Below are positions 1,115 through 47,700 of a stretch of 64,000 nucleotides of DNA, in pieces; within the stretch, counting starts at the first letter, position 1, and every line of letters begins with the position of its first letter. The notes under the pieces are model-generated. The model searched no databases. It saw only the letters and a list, made by a program, of their open reading frames with translations, and was not told the origin of the DNA. The position numbers and the translations under genes are program-made. Source of the DNA: Orbicella franksi (Eukaryota); the NCBI GenBank assembly GCA_964199315.1, contig OZ116708.1, positions 27,776,001 through 27,840,000 on the forward strand. Reading direction: 5' to 3'.

Positions 1115-20665
<19,551 letters not shown>

Positions 20666-22321
20666 GTTGGACGAAGAAAAATATCAACTTTTCGTACATT
20701 TCATTCCGAAAAGAACTATGGGAAGAAAGAGAAGGCCGCATTGCAGCGCGCATTGCTTGATGGGAATTCAAAAGATCGCGGGAAATGTAAAACTATCCAA
20801 AAATCTCTTCAATATTGGCCACTTCTCAAAGCTGCTCAGATTTTTAGATCTCAGTTCAGCCGGCTTGATCGGCTTTCAGGCCTTTCGTGAGGAGTCTAAA
20901 TAACAATAGGCACTAGGTACTTTTGCTTGCAACTTTGTTGTTCCATTTATGAGACAAGTGGCACAAGACGTTGAGTATTGTAACACCCCCTGAAACGGAC
21001 TGTCTCGCAAAATTTTCGTTGCGTTAAGTGTTGCGAAAACCGTGGAAGTGGTGACATGAACAAAAACGTTTTTAAAGAAAAAGAGCACAATGTCCAAAAT
21101 CGTGCCTGGTTGCATAAATCTAAGAGCCTGTGCACATATTGCACTGAAATAGACTTTATGACTTTAATTAAACTTCGAGTGATCGCGTTAATTGTCTCTA
21201 TGACTCAAAATCAAAACCGATCAAACATCTTTTCCTGCACTTGCCACCAGTCGTACAATTTTTACCTATGAGTTCGGATTGGCTTATTAATTCACTCTTT
21301 GGGGCCGTTTTGGCTTTGACCAAAGTTCGTAAATTTTTCTGACCGATGACTGAGTCGAACTGAATCAGGTAGAGTTTGGACTATACCGGGTTTTACTGAC
21401 ATCAGCTCTTTACATGTGAAATTTAGAAACTAGTCCAATTTAGTATAAACTAGAAAGTCTAGAAGAGCAAATTTAGTTACAATGTCAAGTTTGAAGGGAA
21501 GAAAATCAAATGCAAAAATACAAAAACTTACAACATTCAGTGTCAATTGTGTGGCTGGGTGCAACTCCTGCCAAACAGCGAGGGAAACTTTTCTCAATTC
21601 ATTTGACGTTTAACAGCAAAAAATATCTCTTAATGTTTAAATTGCAGAACTTCAAGTTTCAAATTTGTTACAGTTACTACAGATAACCATATGGCACAGA
21701 TTCTATCAGTTTCACGCATCTACAATTTTGCCAGACTAAAATTAACTTTTGATGACTGAAAGATAAAACAACACTGTCATGGTGTAAACAAAGATAGCCC
21801 TGTAGGCTTCTGTTGACAGTAATTAATGATGCGCGTAATATCTGATAACTGAGAACCACAGCTGTGAAGACTTGCCCTACATTTGGGTGCCTCCAGGGAT
21901 TTGAAACTCGCCTGACCCCAATGAGGACTAAGAAAACACCGTAAATACGTCAGGTACCTTTTATGACACAGCATCCTCTATTCTAGAGGCAAAGAACTGG
22001 GTGGAATTCCTAAAATTAAATTATCTGACGTTGACCGATGAGTATTTAAGTATCGGAAGAAGTCTCTATGTCGGATTACTGAGTATTTTATAAACCATAT
22101 ATATTAAACTACAGAAGGAAATCGTTCAACCATGTCTTCCTGAGAGAAGATCAGGCCCTGTTTAGGACAGACTTGCCTGAAATCCTTTCCCCTTTTCAGA
22201 GCATTGCGGCCAAGAGCCATAACCTGTGCGGCGGTAAGTCCCGGTTTAAGCCATATAAGAGAGTATCCCCGCCCCCGACCCGGCGAGAGGAGATAGTTTC
22301 TATCTGGTTAGCTTATCTTAC

Positions 22322-23571
22322 CAGTGCATTCATAAGACAGACAGTAAACTGTGTCTCTGTGTCCTTTCAGCATATCAACCAGCGCACCTTCAGTTGTATC
22401 GTACACCTTTGAAGTTAACAATGTATGCATTAGTTTCCATCTCACAGTACAGAAAACAGAATATTGCTAAAGCTTTATGTTCGCAGATTAAACAGGGCGT
22501 TATCAAAAGGTGGAGAGTTCACATCATGTTTCATAAAGATAAAATGGTCATAGACATTTTGTTGAGTTCATGATCCATAACGTTTTAATTTGAGGGGCGA
22601 AAATTAAAATCAAACCTCCATTCTCCTCTCGCCCATGGTTACTTTGGCAAGAGGAGATGCTGATCAGGGCGGGTAAGGTTAAGTGAAGAACCCGGTCATT
22701 TAATCTTTAATCCGCCTTCCCCAAAACGGCTCACGAAAATCCCTCTAATTCCTTGATCATGGAGAATAGAGTAAGGTTCATTTGTTGTACTCATTTGTTT
22801 AATTATTTACAATGCCAACTTTCGTATGCTCTGTTAATAAATCATATTTTCAAATCGCCACCTTGAATAGACTGATTTGTTTGGAATGCCGAGTGTCAAC
22901 TGTCAGTTTGCGGTTTTCTAATCCCACACGCCATTTAATCACCTAAAAAAGACTTACATGGGGGTAGCTACTTGAAGTAGAAAAATAATACGCGACCTTC
23001 TGAATTCTCTTTGTATTTCACCGTTTAATATGACGGGGAAATAAAATCAATTAACACGGAAAATATTTTGTTTTTAATTAATTAAGCAATATCTCGTGTA
23101 CAGTGGCGAAAGATTTCGTGAGCACCACTTTAGCCGTTAGAACCATTTGAGCGCATTATGACATGGAGATGACAGCAAGAACGCGTTTTCTCAAATAAAT
23201 CAATACAACTTTGTCCATTTGTAAACAAACTATGAAAATCAGGCCCAGAACCTTCTTTCACATATATCTGTTTCGTTTGTAAATGTATAGTTACCAAGAT
23301 TAAGTTTCCAGCAGCAATGAGGATATACGAGCCATTAGGGCTGAAGATTAGGTCGTAAATCCTATAGAAAACCCCAAAAAGACATGACATTAGTAAACTT
23401 GGAGTTCACGTGGATAAAACTACACGAGTTGTCTGCCTTCAGATGGCTATAACGTAAACTGAATGTGTTTTAGTGAATAAAATCGCGATTCTCATATACC
23501 CACCACTGAGACTGCTTTGATTTATCCACAACTTTATCCAACCACAATCTATTCACTCGGGCCAGAGCCAT
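22322..23571 (-). CDS. Divergent duplicate of IFT122 coding exons 1-3 (alternative N-terminal cassette or short paralogue)
   Basis: Exon 1' 23571-23504 [22 protein letters not shown](W); exon 2' 23361-23295 [22 protein letters not shown] (67 nt, same as canonical); exon 3' 22406-22322 [28 protein letters not shown](G) (85 nt, same as canonical). GT-AG sites are present, phases 2/0/1 match canonical, and there are no stops. Confidence 0.85.
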
Positions 23572-24672
23572 AGTCGCAGCGATCCCCTGTTAACAGGGCT
23601 TAAGTGTTGAAGTTGAAATGCATTTGAAATGCTCGTAAATCTAAATGTGACGCGTGGAGAAAGTTTCTGGCAGTGCTCACTCATAATCCGCCATTGTCTA
23701 GCTTCTGTTGCGTGATCAGAGATCTAAAGATTGTATGAAGTTTCCAAAACATGTCTGGAACGTACGTAACGGAAAACGAGTTTAATAGCGAACCGTGTTG
23801 GCGTGGAATGACCTCAAAAAAATGATTGAACAGTCGGGTTGCATGACATGACTTATAATATGTCAATTATATACAAAAATATATACATATCTGTAGAAAA
23901 ATCTTACTTAGGAACAAAGCTATGTTGTAAATTAAAAATACCCTAAAATGTTTGATAATAAGATCAAGATGTTCACGCGTTCTGTTTAAAATAAAGTACT
24001 TTCCGCGACCTAGTCAGTTAAGATCAGTATTTCGTCCTTGATTTAATAACTTGAAAATGGTGTTCCATTCTTGGATGTTGTCGACAAAAATATGAAGATT
24101 TGTTGACTTAACTCTCAAGATAAAACATTACAGTTTGAACGCACATGAAAACTGTGAAAAGAACAATCACTGAGAAAGTTAATTGACAAAGTACGATGGA
24201 GTAAAAAAAAATGTTATGAATAACAACATCAGCATAATAAAAATAATAGAGACTGAAGTGAAATGAATCTACGACGAAATTTTGGAGATGAAATCTGAAG
24301 ATTGTTATAAAAAATTTAATGGCCCGTCTGAACTTTTTCAGATTTTTTTCAGCCATACGGCATACATTATTTGCCCCTGAAAAACCGCTTGTAAAGTTAC
24401 ATTTCAATTTAAACATCTATGCTCAGGAAGTTAAGCTAGGCTTTTAGCATGTCTCAGAACATCACGCAATACAGAAAGGAAGTCAAAATAAAGATCATGT
24501 CTAATAATAGTGAAGTGTTGAGTTGTTTTTATCTTCTAGAATTTCAGTCGTGCTATACTGCAGGCGCAAAAACAAAACAACAGTCAGTCATCTTTCATTT
24601 CCTTGTTTCAAACCGAGCTTTATAAAGGTAAATATTATTTTGAAGTTGATTAACTGAATTGATGCATATGGG

Positions 24673-25548
24673 TTGTCGTTGATCAATGATTCTAGAAAAC
24701 GTAATCAAGAACAGATTAGCTTCAGAAATGCCACAAACGAAGTGAAACGCACTAAGGGGAAGATGCAGAGTTCGAGTAGAATTCCACGGCGAGTAAGCGG
24801 TGAAGGAGACAGTGTTTCCTCTAATACGGACGTGAAAAAAGGCAAGCAGGAGACTCCTCAGAAAATATCATTAACTGGTCAAGGAAAAACTGCCAAGTTA
24901 TTGCGCCAGAGACTGGCATTCGCGTTAGCAACCAACACGAAGCTAAAATCGGATTCTAGTAACAGTGAGTCTGATCCAGAAACTACTGGTAAAGGGTCAA
25001 AGACTCAAGAGGGGAGAAAAACATCAATTCCACGAAAGATCTCTCAGGAAACTACGAAAAAAACAACTGAACAGCAGCATCTGTTAGGGGAGAAAAACAA
25101 CGAGGGCAATATACCAGATGCGAGCGAAAGAAGTCGGAAATTTGGAACAACGCAGTCTTTTTTGAGGAATGGCATTGATAATATTGAGCAAGGAAAAATA
25201 TCAACGGCGGATTTACCGAGACAAAAGAGACCCACGCGACTTTCCAATTTTTCTTCGGATATAAACAATGAAGTGCTCACTAACAATAACACAGCTGTGA
25301 CACTGTCACGAGATCCACCGAGCTTCAACGAGTCATTACCGAATATTCACGAAATAGCTACGAAGAAATCCAAAGGTATCACTTCGCTGGAACATGGCAA
25401 TTTTGACGTTATAGAAAGGGAGTTGTCCAAGCTAAAAGTGGAAATGTATAAAACGTTGGAAGATTTTCAAGAAATAAATGCCGTAACTGAAGGTGTGAAA
25501 ATGAAACTTGAAGAACTAAGGAGAGACAGAATTCGCTCTGCAAGCTAG
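24673..25548 (+). CDS. Orphan single-exon ORF: Ser/Lys/Thr-rich disordered region with C-terminal coiled coil (261 aa from first ATG at 24763)
   Basis: 876-nt open frame in AT-rich DNA; SRIP and TSIP motifs; heptad-like C-terminus IERELSKLKVEMYKTLEDFQEINAVTEGVKMKLEELRR. No family recognised. Confidence 0.65.
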   Translation: MSLINDSRKRNQEQISFRNATNEVKRTKGKMQSSSRIPRRVSGEGDSVSSNTDVKKGKQETPQKISLTGQGKTAKLLRQRLAFALATNTKLKSDSSNSESDPETTGKGSKTQEGRKTSIPRKISQETTKKTTEQQHLLGEKNNEGNIPDASERSRKFGTTQSFLRNGIDNIEQGKISTADLPRQKRPTRLSNFSSDINNEVLTNNNTAVTLSRDPPSFNESLPNIHEIATKKSKGITSLEHGNFDVIERELSKLKVEMYKTLEDFQEINAVTEGVKMKLEELRRDRIRSAS

Positions 25549-29386: not shown

Positions 29387-29400
29387 GTTGCTATGGAAAC
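29387..29400. promoter_or_regulatory. RFX X-box-like motif GTTGCTATGGAAAC
   Basis: Exact fit to the X-box consensus GTHNYY-AT-RRNAAC; target gene unknown. Confidence 0.3.
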
Positions 29401-33076: not shown

Positions 33077-33528
33077 GGTGGCTCAAAACATTTTCCAGCA
33101 CTTAGATTTTGATGGGTCATTATAACCACTCTTTGTCGCTTGATGCTTCAATCATGGTATCAAAAAACTGCCCAATCATTGGTGAACACGTTGTTGTCAT
33201 TTTCGTGACACAATAGGTTATCATAGCAACAGTATGACCTGCTAAAAACACTCTTTATTACAGCTTTAGGGGCTTATAATTCAAAAACCGCACTTTGGAA
33301 TTTTTTTATATTATCAAATTTTAATAAGCATGATAAGATGCAACCTTTTGGCAAAGTTTAAAAAACCTCCGTACGTAGGGTTTAGTGCCACCTTAAATTT
33401 TCAAAACTGATAACAACGTGTTCACCAATGATTGGGCAGTTTTTTGATACCGTGATTGTAACATCAATTGATAAAGAGTGGTTATAACGACCATCAAATC
33501 TAAGTGCTGGAAACTGTTGTGAGGCACC
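33077..33528. mobile_element. Non-autonomous DNA transposon with TTAA target duplication and ~120-bp TIRs (Kolobok-like)
   Basis: TTAA-GGTGGCTC... and ...GAGGCACC-TTAA; arms align as inverted repeats; RR/YY termini. Confidence 0.75.
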
Positions 33529-44700: not shown

Positions 44701-47700
44701 TTAAGTGTCCAATAGCTTTCCTGTTTTCTGACTGGCTGTTTCTTTTTATGGCATGGGTATAGAACATATCATGACGTAATTTACTGAACGCATCTATGAA
44801 CAACGTACGAGCAATGATGACAAAGCCAGTGTATCTCCAGTGTAAGCCAGCCCAACCTTGTGGTGCGCCATAATTTAAACATTTCTAGTAGTGTAGTGGT
44901 TTACCTTGCTGCAGGTTTCGGTGCTGCTGCTTTCTTCATTGTCGATTCAGCTTGAGGGTTTTGTTCTACTTCAGGAGGAGGTTCTGGGTAAAAGCAAATA
45001 CACACAATCAGTTGATACCATGCCTAAAGGTTAACCTGTTAACACGTGCGCCGTGAGGGAAAGGGTGAAAAAAGAATCGGCGGGCGGAACGAGCCAAGAG
45101 GAGGCTAGAGTGAAATATCTGCGAGAACAAGCTTGGCCTCAGAGATTTTTTGTTTGGCCATTATCCATCCCCAGAGGGGCGAGGAGAAAAAAAACCTTTG
45201 CATCGTAAAGGATGGCACTGAACGAAAAAGCGACACCTAGACACAAGATACCTAGTGAAGATGCTTTGTTGCCGAACAGACTTTGCCGTCGGACTCACAG
45301 ATTTCGTCAGAAGAGACGAGATGATCAGGTCAGAACTTGATCTCTTAATTTCTTAAACTGGGGCACTCCGGCTGTTCTAATAATAACCAAATCGGCACTA
45401 AATAACGATTACGCGGCTCAACGCAATAGGCTGTGATTGTCTAGCTGGATTTTGGTCTTAGAAGGGTAGCTTCCTTTTAATGCAGCCACGACAAAGAGTT
45501 GGTTTGACTTGGAATACTCGAAAATATTCAAACTCCGTTCGTAAACAGTAAAAGCACCCGAAAAACGTTTAGATTGTGTGGCTAATCTTCACTTTCCTGT
45601 GGGATAAACCCTCGCGGAAACTACGTGGAAAGTGATCAGTATTCATGAAAACTTGCAAAGAAAACAAATCAAACAACTATTCACTAACGATCTAATGGGA
45701 TAAGCGAACACCGACGCTAATCAACGTTTGTGTGGCTCATATCGCAAATGGCTGTGACTGGCTAACTGGACTTCGAATAAACTGGCGGAACGGTCTAAGA
45801 ACGGCGCCATTCCCTTCAAAAATTGAGTTCAACATGAAAAACTCGAAAATATTCAAACTTGTTTGTAAACGACAAAAGGTATAAAAAGAACGCATAGATT
45901 ATGTCACCAATCTTCAACGTTGCTTGATGAAGCGCACGGAAATCATCTAGGAGGTGAGCTGTTTTCATGACAACAAATAAACAAAACAAACAGAATTGAA
46001 AGCAATATGTAAATATCTTAATGTGATCAAAGGTGTTCCATTGTACATGGACAGGTGAAGCCAAGTGGTTCCACAGTTCCTGTCCATTGCACGGACAGAT
46101 GATTCAGAAAACATCAAACTGAGTTCACAGTTCAACTTATGTGAATTTAAGCGGATTGGAAACATAACCAGGTTGTCGTTATCCAAACATGATTCAACCA
46201 ACGATAGTTTTAAGGGATTAACAGGAACAATAGCTGTCAACGAGTTCGTCGCAAACGTAATTGAATGGTTCAAGAATATGTCACCAACTCGAAAAGAACA
46301 AAAGGGAAAGTATTAAGCCGCGAAAAAAGTTTTCCAGCTTGAATTCCTGTTGCTTAGCAACAACCTGGTTTACCAAACAAGAAGTACAGATCACGGTTGT
46401 GGTTAGCTTAAAGAGAAAACTCTGAAATAAATATCAGAGAAATGGTGTGCAGTTGCTCTTACGAAATCTAATAACTAAGCCAAATCAAAAAGTGATTGCC
46501 AAAAATAAATAATAAAATATATACAATTGTGTGCTAACACAATGTCCATTCTCCGAGTCATCCATTGTACATCAAAAATTACTGAAGCGTTGTAAATAGC
46601 CATATTGAAATAAAACAATGTAAGCTGAGGCGAAATGCAGTAGTTTATGCAGTACATTGTTTTATACAGGGGAGTGTTACAGGAAAATAGATAAAAAAAT
46701 AAAGAGCTCAACCGAAATAGAGCCGTATTTTGGTGACGAGTTCTGCTGTTCATCATTTTCTTATGTCAGAATGTAGCCGAAGTGACTTCTTGGAGTGCCT
46801 TCATTAGCAACAAGCAATTTCGTAAACTTACTTTGTAAATCACTTTATACGTATATTTTGGCTATGAGCACTTCATCAATCTAACCGCCCATATTCTTGT
46901 AGACGTTTTAAATTGTTACAAATCCTTATAAATGAAGAACATGTTTCATTTTCAACTAAGATGCACCCTATTATAACCATTTTGCTATTTTGTTGAATTA
47001 TCAAAATCGATTGTACATAACTTTTGACATTTACGCGTTTGTGTATTTGAACTGAAAAATGATCTTCAAGTTGGAGATAAAACTAGTAATTTCATAACTG
47101 CATCACATGATGAAATTTGCAAGGATGGACTAAATAACGGCCTACCCACTAAACAGTGAAACTTACGGGGGAAGGGTGATGGAAACCAATATTAGCAAAT
47201 TGGAAGCGATTGTATTGATAATAAATTCACAGTAAATTATGATGCCATCGCGCTCTTAGAGCTTCATCGCATTAGTATAGTAACATTTAACAAAACGAGG
47301 CTATCAGTTTTAGTTGTAAATATGTCTTGTGGACTTTGAGGTCACGCTGAAGATAACGACTTTAAATGTCCCCTAAAATATCAATAAGATGCCGGCGAGC
47401 TATAAGTTCAATACCGTGTCAATTCACCTGTTACCTGTTCGTCAAATGATGCGATGTATCTGAATATAAGTTCTGTCAGAGAATGTCTAGAGGACAGACT
47501 TTTCAAATACATTTTACTATCATTGAGTAGAAATTACAAGGTTGTTTTCAAAAGAGTGTCTACGAGTTAAAATGACTTTGAGTAGATAACTATGAAAGCA
47601 AGTGTGGAGATGTTAATCGAACTAACCGAAATATAACGTGTTTGATTTCTGGTCAACACAGTTTAGATGAAGAATAACTGTTCATTTAATGACAGAGCTA

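Follow-up and report, generated by a model that had tools for sequence, protein, structure and literature searches.

IFT-A is generally regarded as one machine that does not vary. Its core subunit IFT122 carries WD domains that lie directly below the ciliary membrane and are stacked with the WD domains of IFT121 (PMC10191852), and, in the first IFT122 propeller, IFT139 sits on the top face and the side face is exposed (PMC10066299). Substitutions that derive from tandem exon duplication, in turn, are a described form of protein variation, with 39 N-terminal cases counted in human (PMC8373072). Strict mutually exclusive exons, as surveyed in human (PMC5740500) and as found in Dscam1-type clusters, are internal, flanked by shared exons, and selected by the spliceosome. 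No description of an alternative first exon, an alternative promoter, or an exon duplication of IFT122 was found in the literature. Coral IFT122 very probably possesses two alternative 5' modules, a divergent upstream set of exons (the cassette) and the canonical set, both of which feed exon 4. The cassette is an N-terminal, alternative-promoter, tandem-exon-duplication-derived substitution, a class that is already known.

Locus layout, RNA support, and promoters

In the window (the whole 64,000-nt stretch of Orbicella franksi DNA analyzed here), IFT122 occupies the minus strand and runs down from the canonical ATG at position 20665, with a C-terminal zinc-ribbon exon at 3040-3156 that matches IFT122. 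Three short minus-strand exons upstream of this ATG constitute a divergent copy of IFT122 coding exons 1 to 3 (Table 1). These exons had been proposed in an earlier sequence-only reading of the locus, and translation bore out all of their coordinates; the identities claimed for exons 2' and 3', the lengths and phases, the GT-AG sites, and the ATG context were also reproduced from the sequence. The coding lengths are 68, 67, and 85 nt in the cassette versus 59, 67, and 85 nt in canonical exons 1 to 3, with equal phases. All internal cassette boundaries have AG before and GT after the exon, and the start context is gcgactATGG. Exons 2' and 3' align with exons 2 and 3 without gaps and are identical at 13/22 and 15/28 residues, respectively, and the two N-termini share 37 of 70 residues. 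At the nucleotide level the exons are 60-63% identical, or 0.61, 0.74, and 0.43 by codon position. The likeness is far beyond chance, given the tblastn E-values of 3e-6 and 7e-8 for the two larger cassette exons within the window and the recurrence at 12 other coral loci. A six-frame self-search of 20700-24760 revealed copies of exons 1 to 3 only and no exon 4' or copies of later exons. A long (GAT/CAT)n-type trinucleotide repeat is present at 18860-18925, in the intron after exon 4.

Table 1. Features of the IFT122 5' region in the window
Feature	Position	Strand	Remarks
Head-to-head neighbor ORF	24763..25548	+	261 aa, single exon; synteny anchor
Upstream promoter/transcription start region of the cassette (P1)	23700..23730	-	RNA contig ends and conserved block TCTCTGATCACGC
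Cassette exon 1', coding part	23504..23571	-	68 nt; ATG at 23571; ends in phase 2
Cassette exon 2'	23295..23361	-	67 nt
Cassette exon 3'	22322..22406	-	85 nt; ends in phase 1
Cassette-transcript intron, 3.2 kb	19087..22321	-	Encloses P2, the promoter of the canonical form, as well as canonical exons 1-3
Canonical exon 1, coding part	20607..20665	-	59 nt; X24 joint 20530..20607, 9 reads
Canonical exon 2	20464..20530	-	67 nt; RNA-backed
Canonical exon 3	20293..20377	-	85 nt; joint 19085..20292, backed by 9 X24 reads and by contigs of X13 and X1
Shared exon 4	19008..19086	-	Acceptor for exons 3 and 3'; reads exit at 19008 toward exon 5

The raw reads of two poly(A) RNA-seq runs, along with two sets of metatranscriptome contigs, were mapped to 18930-24800. 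The cassette is transcribed, and its three exons are spliced. The splice from exon 1' to exon 2' (23504 to 23361) and that from exon 2' to exon 3' (23295 to 22406) were each recovered in 5 reads with 4 starts in run X24, in a contig of depth 6.4 in X13, and at a depth of 22.7 in X1. The splice from exon 3' to exon 4 (22322 to 19086) was found in one X1 contig with a depth of 22.7 and is unlisted in X24 and X13. This contig (record 7, 393 nt) consists of the 5' untranslated region (UTR) from 23715, exons 1', 2', and 3', and 28 nt of exon 4, and it carries all three cassette junctions. The joint 19085..22321 skips 3,235 nt and ends in CT..AC, which is GT..AG on the minus strand. All three junctions that had been predicted from the sequence are therefore present in RNA, and the predicted 22322-to-19086 splice, which would give full-length IFT122 with a swapped N-terminus, is borne out by the in-frame X1 contig. 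Support for the last splice comes from a single contig of a single run, whose 28 nt on the exon 4 side are fewer than the 31 nt asked by the mapping tool, and the X24 reads over the end of exon 3' are too few for this junction to be listed. In X1, the contig with the canonical exon 3-exon 4 junction likewise ends after 28 nt of exon 4, the point at which a k=31 assembly graph would have to branch if both isoforms are present.

The canonical junctions are represented by 9 reads each in X24, by contigs of depth 55 in X13, and by contigs of depth 15-167 in X1. By junction counts and depths, the cassette form is roughly a substantial minority of the transcripts, at approximately 10-50% of the canonical level. 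The top figure represents 5 versus 9 reads, and expression is poorly gauged by contig depth. Some cassette transcripts may have a truncated or non-productive fate. In a second species, the proteins P0271 and P0272 from JGI contigs have exon 1' joined straight to exon 2', and these products are independent RNA evidence from another species. Intron retention at 22136-22284 and 19322-19713 was also considered and was rejected, since the contigs there show indels or very high depth and are likelier to be copies of a dispersed repeat with expression elsewhere. In these two stretches the RNA word depth rises to ~2,700 or the contigs carry indels; both resemble a dispersed expressed repeat family, and in other species related sequence comes after exon 3' in the read-through ORFs P0274 and P0275. 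A look-up of the exact sequence of P0274 returned no record.

The sequence-only reading had offered a short stand-alone WD40 protein as an alternative. As a separate gene, the cassette would encode a peptide of ~84 aa. This reading agrees with the Pocillopora damicornis annotation, which reads from exon 3' into the intron, and with X24, in which no read-supported junction leaving exon 3' is listed. However, exon 3' runs on into exon 4 in the X1 contig with the frame kept, the phase-1 end of exon 3' at a GT is kept in every lineage in which it could be seen (see below), and the read-through tails vary among species and are unconserved. One blade and one strand are not known to form a propeller alone, which also counts against such a peptide. 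A separate gene is thus very improbable, and the joining of exon 3' to exon 4 is the preferred reading.

The RNA contigs of the cassette begin at 23715 (X1) and 23725 (X13). These starts coincide with the block TCTCTGATCACGC, which is kept in seven lineages ~150 nt upstream of the cassette ATG. The poly(A) depth is zero at 23830-24221 and, in X24, at 20694-22261. The canonical 5'UTR is short, with no poly(A) reads above 20693 (the depth of the bin 20694-20889 is 0). The two zero-depth stretches indicate that the two transcripts have separate starts: the cassette transcript starts near 23715-23725 and the canonical transcript within ~30 nt of the canonical ATG. The conserved block CCCATAGTTCT lies at ~20700-20720, ~45-55 nt upstream of the canonical ATG, and occurs at the same position in nine other loci; it probably belongs to the canonical core promoter. 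The AG of this block could serve as a splice acceptor in some lineages. A search for the X-box (RFX) motif GTHNYYATRRNAAC with ≤1 mismatch revealed no site at either IFT122 promoter, an absence that is not informative. Across the window, the motif has 35 matches at ≤1 mismatch versus 14 expected by chance, and perfect palindromic matches occur at 29387-29400, 33217-33230, and 45961-45974, none of them at the IFT122 promoters.

The cassette and the canonical exons might also be chained in one transcript, which would produce an IFT122 with an N-terminal extension. In line with this, the Oculina patagonica protein model starts at the cassette ATG and matches the Pfam profile of the first propeller (PF23381) twice. 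This species has, 44 nt upstream of its canonical ATG, a phase-compatible AG with an open frame, and use of this AG would add 88 residues, which fits the 1283 aa of the model if the canonical Oculina protein has ~1195 aa. However, the path is shut by an in-frame stop or lacks an acceptor in 6 of 10 lineages (the window, L003, L009, L005, P. damicornis, and L001), none of the four RNA runs lists a joint leading from 22322 to the region of canonical exon 1, and X24 shows zero poly(A) depth from 20694 to 22261. The chained protein is accordingly considered extremely improbable.

The favored mechanism is one of alternative promoters. The upstream promoter would drive exons 1', 2', and 3', spliced directly to the shared exon 4, and the internal promoter would drive canonical exons 1, 2, and 3, joined to the identical exon 4. 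Pairing of the exon 3' donor with the exon 4 acceptor would remove the 3,235 nt that include the canonical promoter and exons 1 to 3, and transcripts from the internal promoter would never contain the cassette. Isoform choice would then be a matter of promoter use and not of splice-site competition. As both transcripts are in frame, both are predicted to encode full-length IFT122, and the predicted forms would differ only in the first ~70-73 residues, a part of the first propeller made up of the leader, the first WD40 blade, and the opening strand of the blade that follows.

Conservation, age, and selection in corals

Using the 74-aa cassette as the query, 12 short ORF calls were retrieved from other coral assemblies. 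Contigs were fetched for these ORFs, together with contigs anchored on the head-to-head neighbor ORF. In total, 12 lineages were compared: the window, L003, L009/L010, L005/L006, L004 (P. damicornis), L011 (O. patagonica), L014, L013, L012, L001/L002, L007/L008, and L015/L016. Partial views were provided by L001/L002 (exons 2' and 3'), L007/L008 (exon 3' only), and the Tara Pacific scaffolds L015/L016 (exons 1' and 2'), and the taxonomic depth of the related loci was gauged solely as sequence divergence. All of the cassette exons visible in the 12 lineages have unchanged lengths of 68, 67, and 85 nt, AG and GT sites, and open frames, and in all 11 of the lineages showing exon 3', this exon terminates in phase 1 and is followed by a conserved GT. 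Wherever the sequence reaches, the cassette is placed between the neighbor ORF and canonical exon 1. The cassette, looked for in other coral genomes, is thus intact in 12 lineages including P. damicornis and O. patagonica. Cassette intron 2' is ~5.8 kb in the divergent lineage L001 (L001:336-6102) versus 0.9 kb in the window (22407-23294); judged from these sequences, a large change in intron size appears to be tolerated while the exons stay fixed. A full-length IFT122 search from a leafhopper protein returned, among the best 120 matches, only bilaterian and bacterial WD40 proteins.

The neighbor ORF is without a Pfam domain and has 40 related protein clusters in coral assemblies, with identities of 36-99%. 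Ten of the fetched lineages have this ORF upstream of the cassette, on the opposite strand, and the remaining stretches end before it. The neighbor ORF and the cassette may share a bidirectional promoter region.

Public annotations of the cassette disagree and mishandle the locus. In P. damicornis (GCA_003704095.1, L004:6001-8367), the cassette is annotated as a separate 84-aa gene, pdam_00020062, a "hypothetical protein" with three spliced exons. In O. patagonica (GCA_052425735.1, L011:1-8742), the IFT122 model begins with the cassette ATG and has 1283 aa, a length in keeping with the cassette and canonical exons chained. Since coral annotations contain either a separate 84-aa gene or a protein of chain length, orthology tables, expression counts, and single-cell atlases may misassign reads. 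A weak exon-1-like piece, LRKLPFMVDKSHD, which would be the third, is present upstream of canonical exon 1 on the reverse strand of the Oculina contig L011 (4550-4588 of the reversed first 11 kb) and may be due to chance or be left over from a further partial duplication.

A maximum-likelihood tree of the exon sequences separated a cassette clade from a canonical clade, each with 100/100 support, and the resolved groupings within the two halves largely agree. The separate clades and agreeing groupings indicate one duplication older than all of the sampled lineages, without later gene conversion. Between cassette and canonical exons, pS is 0.72 (the synonymous sites are saturated) and pN is 0.315. 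The coral canonical N-terminus is 85% identical to the N-termini of 12 bilaterian IFT122 proteins and the cassette 51%, which indicates that the cassette is the derived copy.

Within the cassette, four phylogenetically independent pairs gave Sd of 72, Nd of 42, and a pN/pS of 0.16 (Fisher 2e-25), compared with a pN/pS of 0.018 for the canonical exons; the all-pair median omega is 0.078 for the cassette versus 0.009 for the canonical exons. Judged by these ratios, the cassette is clearly constrained as a protein, approximately 9 times less tightly than the canonical exons, and its approximately 9 times faster non-synonymous evolution also fits a less important role. Processed or decayed pseudo-exons were considered and rejected, as stops, frameshifts, lost splice sites, and an omega near 1 are not found. 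The cassette could still be a functionless duplicate in decay, with transcription and splicing as mere noise, in agreement with its faster evolution and lower junction counts relative to the canonical exons. Against this stand the pN/pS value of the independent pairs and the count of zero stops, frame-shifting indels, and splice-site losses across the 12 lineages, between which synonymous sites are saturated, and such decay is extremely unlikely. Stops or frameshifts in orthologous copies and a dN/dS near 1 would have spoken against the old tandem exon duplication kept under selection that the sequence-only reading had proposed; the orthologues contain none, and the duplication is supported by the RNA junctions, the intactness across species, the reciprocal monophyly, and the pN/pS. 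The 5' part of the gene would thus have been duplicated once, in tandem, before the 12 sampled coral lineages split. The canonical copy would since have been nearly frozen, and the cassette would have diverged fast at first and later come under purifying selection.

The replaced propeller segment and its meaning

The P. damicornis cassette product P0270 matched the Pfam family PF23381, the first beta-propeller of IFT122, with 58.3 bits against a cutoff of 28, over profile positions 8-68 of 350. The cassette aligns to residues 10-69 of human IFT122 in the solved IFT-A structures. Read as a WD repeat, it comprises one complete blade, preceded by the N-terminal leader and followed by the initial strand of the blade after it. 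The cassette-specific residues include the replacements QC->QW, NRVL->NLIL, QPLKGH->DMLKGH, and YCV->YCL. The replaced positions are invariant in the sampled coral canonical and 12 bilaterian sequences, and the cassette-specific residues are mostly constant across the cassette lineages, the GH being altered in one (L012). The cassette protein is presumably made, joins IFT-A, and alters the surface of the first propeller; a changed blade could, we infer, affect a subunit contact or the exposed membrane-facing surface.

The two isoforms may be biochemically equivalent, with the duplicated module kept solely for its promoter, which would supply IFT122 in a tissue, at a stage, or under a condition in which the canonical promoter is silent; this would be a case of subfunctionalization in expression and not in protein function. 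Purifying selection is expected under this reading too, since folding into the propeller is still required of the cassette; the cassette retains core WD40 positions (IYD, AAGN, VYDT, LKGH, and TVYC), and the two promoters are clearly separate. However, the segment that is replaced is 85% identical between corals and bilaterians and the cassette is merely 51% identical to it, and the fixed residues of the cassette at otherwise invariant positions suggest a changed, selected surface. These fixed changes lean against equivalence without settling the question, and equivalent isoforms are a serious alternative, quite plausible if short of probable. More tentatively, stony corals might build two biochemically distinct IFT-A complexes that differ in the membrane-facing first propeller of IFT122, each serving a different kind of cilium or flagellum. 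Fixed changes such as QPLKGH->DMLKGH would then retune the contact with IFT139 or IFT121 or with a membrane cargo adaptor, and the candidates would include the flagella of sperm, the motile cilia of larvae or of the epidermis, and sensory cilia or those of cnidocytes. A cell-type-specific variant, as in sperm versus epithelium, had been put forward as a possibility in the sequence-only reading.

The IFT122 N-terminus is among the most conserved parts of IFT-A, as its identity between corals and bilaterians indicates. An old, selected, and transcribed alternative to it represents a natural experiment on the role of the propeller surface and a direct handle on whether different cilia use different IFT-A complexes. 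RNA and deep purifying selection together constitute unusually complete evidence for a finding derived from a scan.

Comparison with known systems

Two homologous sets of coding exons lie in tandem inside the coral IFT122 gene, and the joints 22322 to 19086 and 20293 to 19086 reach the same exon, the former on one contig. The transcription starts are separate, as judged from RNA contig ends, poly(A) depth, and the conserved block, and across the 12 lineages each copy is conserved and shows purifying selection. A strict mutually exclusive exon pair was considered and rejected, since there is no constitutive exon upstream of the cassette. Like strict mutually exclusive exons (PMC5740500; Dscam1-type clusters), the two coral copies are homologous, tandem duplicated, of equal length and phase, and included one or the other; unlike them, the cassette has its own start codon and 5'UTR and no shared upstream exon.

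Compared with the first WD40 propeller of canonical IFT122 (WDR10; 8bbe/8bbf and 8fgw; PMC10066299 and PMC10191852), the cassette is recognizably its first ~70 residues but is only ~51-53% identical and carries its own fixed residues at invariant positions. The locus shares with the human N-terminal cases (PMC8373072) a tandem duplicated 5' coding region with a promoter for each copy, the joining of one copy or the other to shared exons with frame and length preserved, and the conservation of both copies across species. It differs from them in that the coral unit is a three-exon block and not one exon, in that the gene encodes a core IFT-A subunit and the lineage is that of scleractinian corals, and in that the swap affects a structural element of a beta-propeller whose identity to bilaterian sequences is otherwise 85%.
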